Sequence record: OQ992562.1
Length of the DNA: 64,000 nt
Strand: one strand, 5' to 3'
The translations under genes were made by a program, and so were the position numbers. Below the pieces are notes generated by a model. It searched no databases. It was given only the letters and a program-made list of their open reading frames with translations, and had not been told where the DNA came from. Shown piece after piece: positions 2,276 through 18,447 of this stretch (its first letter is position 1; every line of letters starts with the position of its first letter).

Positions 2276-3412
2276 ATGGGTCTTTATGCCAAAGTTGTTG
2301 ATCATGATGAAGTACATGATCAATTTACGGGTAAACGTATTTATGCCAATGATTACAATACGAGTAACTCAGATGAGAAAGAAGAATTTGATAGGCATTT
2401 CTATTCTCATTTCCAAGATTCAGAAGCAATTGAAAGTAGCGTAAGTTGTGATTGTCGAGCAATCGAAGACGCACATAAACTCGGAGTAATCTGTGATATT
2501 TGTAATACTCCAGTTGTCAATACTTCTAGCCGCCCTATCGAACCATCAATGTGGGTTCGTACACCAAAACATGTACGTAGTCTAATTAACCCACGTTTAA
2601 TCATTATGCTAACCGGATATCTAGTAACTAAAGAATTCGATTTCTTAGCATATCTAACTGATACTTCTTATCGATACGATGTGGAATCTATTGGTTCTAA
2701 AGAAACACGCAGAAAAGTAGATAGGCTACTGCATCGAGGATTTGAAAGAGGATTAAATCACTTCATTGATAATTTCAATGAGATCTTCCAATTCCTACTA
2801 GATGCAAATATTATTTCTAATAATAAATCCGAATTCGCTCAATTCGTTGCTCAGAATAAAGATAAGTTATTCCCTAAATATTTACCAGTTCCTTCTAAAC
2901 TCTGTTTCGTAGCAGAATCAACCACATCTGGTACTTACTTAGATAAACCAATTGAAGCAGCAATTGATGCTACCTTAACCTTCGCTAGTATTGATGCATC
3001 ATCTGTACCACTTAGTCCAATTAAAGCTCAGAATAGGACTATGCGAGGACTAAGACTATATGGCCAGTTCTACGAGATCTACGCAAAATCACGAATTGCT
3101 CAAAAGCCTGGTCTTGCTCGGCGTCACATGTTTGGTGCTCGTCTCAACGCTACGGCACGTGCAGTAATCACTTCTATTAGTGACCCGCATGATTATGATG
3201 AATTACATATCCCTTGGGGAGTAGGTTGTCAATTATTAAAGTATCATCTAACTAACAAGTTAAAAGCTAAGTTTAACATGACAACTCGTGAAGCATTCTC
3301 ATTTGTATATGAGAATGTACTTCAATATAACCAAATCATCGCTGATCTATTTAAAGAGTTAATTGCAGAGGCCGCACCATATAAAGGAATGGGTTGCACT
3401 TTTCACCGAAAT
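2276..3412 (+). CDS. Non-virion RNA polymerase beta-prime N-terminal subunit (phiKZ gp55-56.1 ortholog), exon 1 of 3; join(2276..3412,3718..3825,4319..4537) = 487 aa
   Basis: Zn-finger CDC..CDIC; ends at FHRN, which joins in frame to PTLQR of exon 2 (beta-prime NRxPTLHR motif); RBS AATAGGAG at 2262-2269. Confidence 0.9.
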
Positions 3413-3717
3413 TAATTTGTATATTAATACTAAATGGTTTCCTTGTAATAGAAATATTACTCGACAAAACTCCTTTAATTGCTGGGACATCTCATTGAGA
3501 CAATCAGCAGCGAAGCTTTCCAGAAATGGATTGAACGTTCAACGACTATCGAAAGGCACGAAAGTGAACCGAGTAGAGTAGAGTCAAGTGACTCGAAATG
3601 GGGAGCACCTTACTGGGTAATGCCAAAGGTGAAGATATAGTCTGGTCTGCATGGTGACATGCAGCTGTCTATTATTAATAGACGGGATAAGCTTAACGAA
3701 CTTATCTGAACACAACG
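3413..3717 (+). mobile_element. Group I intron 1 (305 nt, no ORF) in nvRNAP beta-prime
   Basis: P1 exon GAAAT/GTTTC (3437-3441) with U3412.G3437 wobble; P7 GACTAT (3544-3549)/ATAGTC; S element AAGATATAGTCT at 3632-3643; ends CTGAACACAACG with terminal G; removal restores the reading frame. Confidence 0.92.
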
Positions 3718-3825
3718 CCGACCCTTCAACGTGGATCTACTCAACAATTCTTTATTACTAAAGTAAAAGATGACATTAATGATAATTCAATCAGCATGTC
3801 AGTATTATGCCTTAAAGCGCCTAAT
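3718..3825 (+). CDS. nvRNAP beta-prime exon 2 (108-nt micro-exon, PTLQRGSTQQFFITKVKDDINDNSISMSVLCLKAPN)
   Basis: Manual translation; not in the ORF track; supplies PTLQR and the N of NADFDGD. Confidence 0.9.
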
Positions 3826-4318
3826 GGACAACTAACTAAATAAGGTAAAAACAATGGAACAAAACGGAGTAGTGTCCGTCTTTGATCCGGCTTCATTTAA
3901 AATTGAATATGAAGTGCTTGATAAATACCTTATTAAGTTAATCAAGTCTAGTTCCCCCAGTGAGTAATCATTGGGGTGAGTTTTCTCTAATTGCTGGGAT
4001 ATCCTGTTAAACTAATCTACCACTGCGAGTCGAAAGACAAAGCCAAGGTTTGAAAAAGATTAGGTAGGGCCAATCAGCAGCCAAGCTCCGTAACATTCCA
4101 TTTAGGAATAGGAGAAGGTTCAACGACTATTACGGTATCAGGTGCACCGGTCCTAGAAATAGGATGTAGGGTCAAGTGACTCGAAATGGGAGACACCCCA
4201 CTCCGAAAGGAAGGGTGAAGATATAGTCTGGTCTGCATGGTGACATGCAGCAGGTGGTAATTATCATGTGGTAATTATACTACCGGGTATGGATTAACGA
4301 CCCATACTGAACATAACG
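3826..4318 (+). mobile_element. Group I intron 2 (493 nt) splitting the catalytic N|ADFDGD motif
   Basis: TAATTGCTGGGA 3988-3999, TTCAACGACTAT 4119-4130, AAGATATAGTCT 4218-4229; ends CTGAACATAACG; removal gives AAT-GCG-GAT-TTT-GAC-GGC-GAT (NADFDGD). P1 not clearly resolved by eye. Confidence 0.92.
3854..3967 (+). pseudogene. 37-aa mini-ORF inside intron 2, probable remnant of a homing endonuclease gene
   Basis: RBS TAAGG at 3841-3845, ATG 3854, MEQNGVVSVFDPASFKIEYEVLDKYLIKLIKSSSPSE*; no nuclease motif left; remnant status is inferred from position. Confidence 0.5.
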
Positions 4319-4537
4319 GCGGATTTTGACGGCGATCAATTGAATTTAACGTTAATGCCTGATGTGTATTTAACTAAAGCAACTGAACGCATTGCTCCAC
4401 ATACATGGGTTCTATCTATTGATGAACCACATGAAATCTCAGGTAACCTTGAATTACAGGGTCCTGTTGTAGAAACGATTATTAACTGGGCGCATGAGAA
4501 GTATTTACCACCATTAGAAGAGTGGTTGAAGTCGTAA
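4319..4537 (+). CDS. nvRNAP beta-prime exon 3 (ADFDGDQLNLTLM...), phiKZ gp56.1-like
   Basis: Track ORF 4340..4537 extends upstream to GCG GAT TTT GAC GGC GAT, the Mg-binding DFDGD motif. Confidence 0.92.
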   Translation, partial: ADFDGDQLNLTLMPDVYLTKATERIAPHTWVLSIDEPHEISGNLELQGPVVETIINWAHEKYLPPLEEWLKS

Positions 4538-4547
4538 TAATAAACTT

Positions 4548-4580
4548 GCCCCTACCACTTATGTAGTAGGGGCTTTATTT
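4548..4580 (+). terminator. Rho-independent terminator
   Basis: GCCCCTAC/GTAGGGGC stem plus T-rich tail. Confidence 0.8.
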
Positions 4581-4628
4581 CCTGTTATGGCAGCGCCTAA
4601 CTATGGATGTAAAGTTCCACTGGATTTA

Positions 4629-18140: not shown

Positions 18141-18447
18141 AATTAATATCCATCCATCTCTCAGGAATGGATATTGTCAAATTGCCTGCTTGATCTCGAA
18201 AGAGTCAAGTAAATCCTCTCTAATTGCTGGGACATCTCAATGAGACAATCAGCAGCGAAGCTTTCCAGAAATGGATTGAACGTTCAACGACTATCCGGTT
18301 ACGCGGAGTACACTCAAGCGAGTGGAAATGGGAGGGACCTGACCACCTAGGGTGAAGGTTAAGATATAGTCTGGTCTGCATGGTGACATGCAGCTGCCTG
18401 CAATACGAGAGGCGGGGTAAGCGTAGCGAACTTACCTGAACATAACG
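18141..18447 (+). mobile_element. Group I intron 3 (307 nt, no ORF) in nvRNAP beta
   Basis: P1 GGT|AATT pairs with AATTGCC (18180-18186), placing the U.G wobble at U18140; TTCAACGACTAT 18283-18294; AAGATATAGTCT 18361-18372; ends CTGAACATAACG. Confidence 0.92.

Follow-up and report, generated by a model that had tools for sequence, protein, structure and literature searches.

PhiPizzaParty (OQ992562.1) is a phiKZ-like nucleus-forming jumbo phage of the genus Phikzvirus, a viable lytic phage isolated on P. aeruginosa (PMC10720484). We have analysed a stretch of 64,000 nucleotides (nt) of this record, called the window below, and describe a group I intron in the gene for one subunit of the non-virion RNA polymerase (nvRNAP). 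Unless another strand or record is named, coordinates are those of the window and features lie on the plus strand. The first gene of the window encodes chimallin (gp54). The interrupted gene is the orthologue of phiKZ gp55 and encodes the N-terminal beta-prime-like subunit of nvRNAP, in which residues 417-421 form the catalytic DFDGD motif (PMC8287921).

Five segments make up the interrupted gene. Exon 1 (2276-3412) has 379 codons and ends in GCTFHRN; it corresponds to a 379-amino-acid (aa) open reading frame (ORF) at 2276-3415, whose TAA stop codon consists of the intron bases 3413-3415. It is followed by a 305-nt group I intron without an ORF (3413-3717) and by a micro-exon of 108 nt (3718-3825), the 36 codons of which correspond to gp55 residues 380-415 and run from PTLQRGS to CLKAPN, with the translation PTLQRGSTQQFFITKVKDDINDNSISMSVLCLKAPN. 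A second intron of 493 nt (3826-4318) has lost the gp56 HNH gene and retains a remnant ORF of 37 aa (3854-3967), in which the start of a gp56-type endonuclease gene is fused to the sequence past the deletion. Exon 3 (4319-4537), the equivalent of phiKZ gp56.1, reads from ADFDGDQLNL to EEWLKS and a stop codon. Three insertion sites are named here by the residues on either side: S1 (HRN/PTL), S2 (APN/ADF) and S3 (DFDGD/QLN). The initial annotation of this DNA had already described the ORF that stops after HRN, the 305-nt intron behind it and the 36-codon micro-exon in front of a second intron, and this layout was reproduced in every part.

Over its length, exon 1 is near-identical to phiKZ gp55, the protein of chain A in PDB entry 7OGP, and the micro-exon is contiguous with exon 1 in phiKZ and in this chain. 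The phiKZ gp55 chain in 7OGP reads FHRNPTLQRGS and later LKAPNAD uninterrupted, in agreement with the spliced reading of the gene. When scanned against Pfam at E <= 0.01, none of the three exons matched a family, nor did the contiguous phiKZ gp55, and the identity of the gene therefore rests on the matches to PDB sequences. A search of the 64-kb window for tRNA genes found none.

The S1 insertion point lies between codons 379 and 380, within the conserved 'NR-PTL' motif of the double-psi beta-barrel, and precedes the intron site N/ADFDGD, long known in phiKZ, by 108 nt. The motif 'NRNPT' is also kept in the beta-prime subunit of AR9. The micro-exon, which has neither a start codon nor a ribosome-binding site of its own, encodes the part of the catalytic double-psi beta-barrel that extends from the PTLQR motif to just before DFDGD. 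In phiKZ, PA7 (MZ444140), T2P and Wadjak1 exon 1 directly abuts the PTLQR exon at CGAAAT/CC. Because these intron-less alleles abut, and because the bases flanking each boundary differ so that the register is unambiguous, the S1 intron is exactly 3413-3717.

We consider it very probable (roughly 90%) that 3413-3717 is a group I intron of the IA type, functional and self-splicing, in the nvRNAP beta-prime-like gene, and that it represents the endonuclease-less form of a mobile intron. The Rfam model RF00028 matched positions 3415-3664 over its full length (model positions 1-253) with 87 bits, compared to a gathering score of 50, and E = 8e-21; the set of intron elements as a whole is far beyond chance. 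The other full-model matches in the window were found at 3930-4250 (75.9 bits), in the S2 intron, and at 18165-18393 (84.2 bits). Together with the intron-less phiKZ allele, the match bears out the proposal that the HRN/PTL site carries a group I intron which is extra relative to phiKZ. It is no assembly artefact, as eight phage records that were deposited separately contain this 305-nt intron, conserved at 96-100%.

The P1 helix was obtained from a fold of 3404-3445 and covers 3408-3441. The 5' exon bases GAAAU and the intron bases UA pair with the internal guide UGGUUUC, giving G3408-C3441, three A-U pairs, the wobble pair U3412.G3437 at the splice site, U3413.G3436 and A3414-U3435, closed by a short hairpin loop. 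LC and KEN49, whose S1 introns also lack an ORF, have this P1 module too. For the S2 intron and for the intron at the gp72 site, the minimum free energy (MFE) folds of P1 pair the last exon U with A; a U.G register there needs a bulge, and the guides of these two introns are approximate.

The catalytic core (3467-3664, P3-P9) was defined by a manual pair table on an alignment of six paralogous introns, combined with the Rfam alignment. The six sequences are the S1 intron of the window, the second S1 lineage described below, the intron of the beta-subunit gene, two S2 introns and an S3 intron. P3 (3470-3475/3600-3605) covaries, P4 (3480-3485/3504-3509) is invariant, P5 also covaries, and P6 is part of the core in the pair table. 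The P7 pseudoknot (3544-3548/3638-3642) is invariant, with five of five pairs formed in all six sequences. Between its strands, 3549-3594 folds into the hairpins P7.1 (3549-3572) and P7.2 (3581-3594), the latter covarying, and further on P8 (3606-3631) and P9 (3647-3664, with a GUGA loop) covary as well. The remaining bases (3665-3717) form P9.1 (3665-3685), P9.2 (3686-3706) and a 3' tail ending in AACG. A P9.0 pairing of G3645/U3646 with A3715/C3716 is proposed: J7/9 covaries with the two bases before the terminal G in three classes of introns (GU/AC, AA/UU and AC/GU), which fits such a pairing. The terminal G itself is present (G3717), as it is in all 20 intron copies compared. The intact P1 with U3412.G3437, the P7 and the terminal G that had been reported from the letters are thus all found in the fold and the pair table.

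Folding the S1 intron alone gave an MFE structure of -76.6 kcal/mol (z = -2.8), from which P2, P3, P4, P5, P6, P7.1, P7.2, P8, P9, P9.1 and P9.2 were recovered. RNAalifold on the six paralogues recovered P3, P4, P5, P6, P7.2, P8, P9 and P9.2, and 26 of the 50 consensus pairs carried a compensatory change. The intron is assigned from its sequence to the phage-type IA subgroup because P7.1/P7.2 is present, this being the only subgroup criterion applied.

In the unspliced RNA, translation would end at the UAA formed by the first three bases of the S1 intron. Excision of both the S1 and the S2 intron from the pre-mRNA would restore a subunit of 487 residues, so that two splicing events about 100 nt apart would be needed to rebuild it, as had been anticipated. 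The full-length product must be made, since the phage is viable and lytic and the subunit carries the catalytic DFDGD motif. From this, and from the missing start signals of the micro-exon, we infer that the S1 intron splices itself in vivo. The native phiKZ proteins have spliced sizes: 56 kDa for gp55, which corresponds to gp55 and gp56.1 joined by splicing, and 74 kDa for gp71-73 (PMC4666361). Two predicted tryptic peptides of the spliced PhiPizzaParty product cover the junctions, NPTLQR at S1 and APNADFDGDQLNLTLMPDVYLTK at S2.

Several points weigh against this interpretation. Direct RNA proof is thin throughout the genus, since ONT-cappable-seq of phiKZ gave no reads supporting splicing of its three predicted introns (PMC10914365). 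The exon arm of P1 has only five pairs and is A/U-rich, and the P1 fold is not significant when compared to shuffled sequences (z = -1.7). Finally, a P10 pairing was sought for normal as well as skipped ligation and amounted to one base pair at best; we have not used it as evidence either way. As a separate observation, the long-read transcriptome of phiKZ, which shows no splicing, conflicts with the native protein sizes, which require it.

The distribution of the intron was followed in 47 Phikzvirus GenBank records. S1 is occupied in 18 of these, nine times by an intron without an ORF and nine times by an intron with an ORF for an HNH protein of 273 or 277 aa, and it is empty in 29. Presence and absence are hence polymorphic at one exact site among close relatives. 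In 16 genomes examined for the lengths of all three introns, S1 was empty six times; the occupied state was 305 nt in two genomes, 350 nt in one, 1194 nt (277-aa ORF) in two and 1244-1250 nt (273-aa ORF) in five. That the S1 intron is new to this phage is not supported, the site being occupied in 18 of the 47 records; none of the 16 records, however, annotates an intron there, and no paper on it was found. Of the phages suggested at the outset for mapping the intron (phiKZ, KTN4, SL2 and PA7), S1 is occupied in KTN4 and SL2 (1244 nt in both) and empty in phiKZ and PA7.

Of the 16 genomes, 12 have an S2 intron and the remaining four use S3; KEN49 has both. PhiPizzaParty (S1 305 nt, S2 493 nt) and LC (305 and 1372 nt) share the short S1 intron and have no S3 intron. 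S3 is also empty in GUMS and Churi (S1 1194 nt, S2 about 497 nt), KTN4 (1244 and 1372 nt), ANB1 (1244 and 1389 nt) and SL2 (1244 and 481 nt). The genomes with an S2 intron alone are phiKZ (1372 nt), PA7 MZ444140 (1389 nt), and T2P and Wadjak1 (about 490 nt). OMKO1 and fnug combine an S1 intron of about 1247 nt with an S3 intron of 1524 nt at an empty S2; PA7 NC_042060 and Brmt have the 1524-nt S3 intron only. KEN49 is occupied at all three sites (350, 1373 and 388 nt). Rfam found a group I core at every occupied site in the 11 relatives scanned. Among more distant homologues, S1 is empty in PhiPA3, PS119XW, Psa21, Phabio, Noxifer, Goslar, Erwinia and Salmonella jumbo phages and AR9, to name the listed examples. 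IMG/VR pattern scans for the S1 junction, with the intron as well as without it, gave nothing new, the single match being a copy of PA7.

Two of these arrangements are worth a separate description. In KEN49 (PP456877.1, 1715-3951) three group I introns interrupt one gene, the S2 intron carrying an endonuclease ORF. The exon between S2 and S3 is 18 nt long and encodes exactly ADFDGD, the catalytic motif, while six of its bases are required for P1 of the downstream intron. The 1524-nt S3 group I intron of OMKO1, fnug, PA7 NC_042060 and Brmt is associated with a 386-aa ORF. In OMKO1, where this intron lies at 3090-4613 of the retrieved sequence, the ORF is disrupted: a search of the intron found no ATG-started ORF of at least 100 aa, and a coding sequence (CDS) of 256 aa is annotated.

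Exon bases vary together with intron occupancy. Exon position -1 is U in all ten alleles with an S1 intron and in all those with an S2 intron, which fits the requirement for a U.G wobble; the empty S1 allele of T2P has C. The four S2-empty alleles read AAG GCT CCA AAC/GCA GAT TTC, with C at -1 and a cluster of synonymous changes. At S3, five of five occupied alleles have GGAGAT, a sequence in perfect pairing with GGUCUCC, the S3 guide, and 11 of 11 empty alleles have GGCGAT. This co-variation fits co-conversion, immunisation of the site or both, the counts being taken from related and thus non-independent genomes.

The S1 introns fall into two lineages with a core identity of 68% over 280 nt. 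S1A comprises PhiPizzaParty and LC (305 nt) together with GUMS and Churi (1194 nt); S1B comprises KTN4, SL2, ANB1, OMKO1 and fnug (1244-1250 nt) and KEN49 (350 nt). A paralogous ORF-less intron of 304 nt is found in the window at 18144-18447 (Rfam 84.2 bits), in the gp71/73-type beta subunit gene between FHGGN and KGVICK. Like the S1 intron it begins with an in-frame UAA, and phiKZ has the gp72 endonuclease intron at this position.

Compared segment by segment, the S1A intron of the window is a mosaic. Its P1-P2 region is closest to S1B (48 of 54 positions), and the same is true of the region from P3' to P8 (31 of 33). From P3 to the 5' strand of P7, it matches the beta-gene intron at 77 of 82 positions, versus 59 of 149 for S1B, and over J8/7-P7'-P9 it is identical (33/33) to the beta-gene intron and to the S2 intron of the window. 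S1 and S2 introns are 85% identical over 88 nt. The pattern points to the S1 intron being a recombinant of paralogous introns, and the copies in a single genome seem to undergo homogenisation.

The first approximately 23 nt of the ORF-less introns, the P1-loop module, are common to S1A (PhiPizzaParty/LC) and S1B (KEN49) with one base different, while the 5' ends of ORF-bearing S1A and S1B introns differ. This suggests that the ORF-less module may have been moved by recombination, which would have spread one endonuclease loss; alternatively, related endonuclease genes may have invaded an empty intron independently. As a further observation, stretches of 38-45 nt that are 95-97% identical to the J8/7-P7'-P9 region of S2 occur in the Pectobacterium phages phiTE and CB7 and in the Escherichia phages 18-1-2, 19-1-2, 24-2-1 and TH18, all unrelated, where they are probably part of group I introns that belong to this subfamily.

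No ORF of at least 100 aa was found in 3413-3717, and the S1 copy of the window is a non-autonomous derivative of a homing intron. With both window introns devoid of endonuclease genes, neither would be expected to home on its own. The 273-aa (KTN4-type) and 277-aa (GUMS-type) ORFs of other S1 introns both contain HNH_3, and the 273-aa form additionally NUMOD4. The two share 73% identity with one another and 34% with phiKZ gp56. Their genes sit in the P1 loop, preceded by the first few bases of the intron and followed by the internal guide. Relative to phiKZ, the S2 intron of the window has kept positions 12-88 and 985-1305 at 98-99% identity and lost about 896 nt, with the deletion junction at a short GAATGG repeat. 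The junction in Wadjak1 differs, so the endonuclease gene of S2 was lost more than once.

The closest known system is the S2 intron of phiKZ gp55/gp56/gp56.1. It interrupts the same gene and is a paralogous IA-type ribozyme with identical P4, P7 and J8/7; in the PhiPizzaParty genome even P9 of S1 and S2 is identical. In both types the HNH endonuclease, when present, lies in the P1 loop and a stop codon is at most a few codons away from the 5' splice site. S1 differs in its insertion site, internal guide and P2. Moreover, the paper on the phiKZ genome predicted S2, and the PDB entity takes it into account, whereas S1 is described in no paper or record found. The T4 introns in td, nrdB and sunY (IA2) resemble S1 in their overall fold, with P7.1/P7.2 inserted and the elements P, Q, R and S conserved, and in residing in essential genes of a lytic phage. 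Where they differ is the position of the endonuclease: the ORFs of T4 introns are located in P6 or P9 loops, those of S1 relatives in the P1 loop. PhiPA3 gp210 carries a group I intron with an HNH gene in a conserved catalytic motif of a multisubunit RNA polymerase gene of a jumbo phage, and related phages that co-infect differ in whether they have this intron (Birkholz et al. 2024, PMC11620839). Here the gene is that of the virion polymerase beta subunit in another genus, and the endonuclease has been kept and shown to be a competitive weapon (PMC11620839), unlike the S1 intron of the window, which has none.

That last comparison bears on the possibility that the ORF-less S1 intron is retained mainly as a block to S1 endonucleases of co-infecting phages of the GUMS/Churi and KTN4/SL2 types. 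It would add a function to the self-splicing, endonuclease-less mobile intron and not replace that explanation; we regard it as a tentative and rather unlikely addition. Versions of S1 with and without endonuclease co-circulate in phages of the same host, and the HNH endonuclease of the PhiPA3 intron damages the RNA polymerase gene of phiKZ, which is intron-less at that site (PMC11620839). All 16 genomes have an S2 or S3 intron, and the S2-empty alleles carry a synonymous cluster at the site; selection against empty, cleavable sites would be expected to leave such a pattern. Still, cutting of the empty S1 site by the S1 endonucleases is presumed, emptiness is evidently tolerated at S1 in 29 of 47 records, and persistence could equally result from the rarity of precise deletion at an essential codon boundary.

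Exon skipping has been suggested as well, in a programmed form where a fraction of the transcripts would join exon 1 to exon 3 and yield an in-frame gp55 without residues 380-415, inactive or regulatory. The arithmetic is favourable, as the length of the micro-exon is a multiple of three and both 5' exons end in AAU, so that HRN-ADFDGD would be read in frame. The proposed skipped product was right as to the frame and the loss of PTLQR, but it would retain the N of NADFDGD, since exon 1 also ends in AAT (N). Over J8/7-P7'-J7/9-P9 the S1 and S2 introns are identical (33/33), a single position distinguishes their last 12 bases, and their 3' splice-site determinants are for this reason interchangeable.

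Two similar group I introns flanking an in-frame exon of 108 nt are moreover reminiscent of genes of the Twort and SIOphi type. In phage Twort, skipping between similar group I introns is reported (cited in PMC3073962); several related group I introns crowd one gene there, with short exons between them and alternative joining possible; the phage family and the gene are different, and skipping is experimental there and conjecture here. In Bastillevirinae (phiNIT1 ribonucleotide reductase, SIOphi terminase), IA-type introns occur two or three to an essential gene, a small exon between two introns was missed by annotation in phiNIT1, and the skipped form is the dominant product of the SIOphi terminase gene; these are Bacillus phages with other host genes, and splicing was verified there by cDNA sequencing (PMC11878797).

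For the S1 and S2 introns of PhiPizzaParty, however, the 36 residues lost would come from the catalytic beta-barrel, leaving the product inactive as an enzyme, and neither 3' exon has a P10 pairing that favours skipping. The interchange of S1, S2 and S3 states across the genus fits turnover of selfish elements better than conserved regulation. We therefore find programmed skipping very improbable, and put equally little faith in the corresponding expectation that phages with S1A and S2 regulate the formation of a gp55 with an NADFDGD junction and half of the catalytic barrel missing. If it were true, the skipped gp55 could join nvRNAP, or block its import or assembly, and so time the switch to late transcription. 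Incidental skipping at a low level is a guess, made on the strength of the precedents only, to which we would give better odds, though still against it. As for the route, an intact S1 ribozyme using the downstream 3' splice site would be more plausible than a hybrid of the S1 5' half and the S2 3' half, a candidate that looks suboptimal, as P3 would pair in it only after a one-base shift, and was rejected.

The weakest alternative, that the S1 intron is a dead insertion which no longer splices and leaves the gene split or broken in this isolate, would suit the truncated 379-aa CDS with scattered small ORFs in GenBank and the missing homing endonuclease, but it is hardly credible given a core, P1, terminal G and peripheral helices that are intact with compensatory changes, a frame in micro-exon and exon 3 that is open, conserved and distinguished from relatives by synonymous differences only, a micro-exon that could not be started independently, a phage that plaques and lyses its host with a subunit holding the catalytic Mg-binding motif, and the 96-100% conservation of the intron in eight genome records.

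In the GenBank record exon 1 is a stand-alone hypothetical protein of 379 aa, exon 3 is annotated from an internal ATG as 4355-4537 only, and the micro-exon is unannotated on its own strand. The record also contains five small CDS labelled 'hypothetical protein', at 3417-3581 (plus strand) and at 3584-3715, 3741-3896, 4007-4123 and 4172-4267 (minus strand), of which 3741-3896 overlaps the end of the micro-exon. Lying within the introns, these CDS look like gene-caller artefacts over ribozyme sequence. A 114-nt ORF equivalent to 3854-3967 is labelled 'HNH homing endonuclease' in the records of GUMS and T2P. None of the 16 Phikzvirus records inspected joins the CDS or annotates the S1 intron; the pieces are given as separate proteins or not annotated. 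The literature search found no description of an intron at HRN/PTL, and the only phiKZ introns named in the literature searched are those of gp55/56, gp71-73 (gp72) and gp178-180 (gp179). The S1 intron is thus a genuine, previously undescribed and unannotated instance of a well-known type of element, and very probably functional.

In the annotation of PhiPizzaParty and its relatives, the essential catalytic subunit of nvRNAP appears as a truncated 379-aa protein with spurious small ORFs, and a 36-codon exon has been overlooked; a joined CDS is needed for knock-down, proteomic and structural work on these therapeutic-candidate phages. More notable than the intron of the window by itself are the hotspot of three sites and the 18-nt exon in its relatives. 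Three alternative intron sites lie close to the codons of the active site, within about 130 nt of one gene's coding sequence, and each of them is empty, ORF-less or endonuclease-bearing in near-identical genomes. They form a compact natural series of the homing cycle, with stages that would correspond to invasion, endonuclease loss, exchange of modules between copies and immunisation by synonymous change. In mixed phiKZ-like cocktails, both the endonucleases of S1 and its ORF-less 'armour' alleles are obvious candidates for a part in phage competition.

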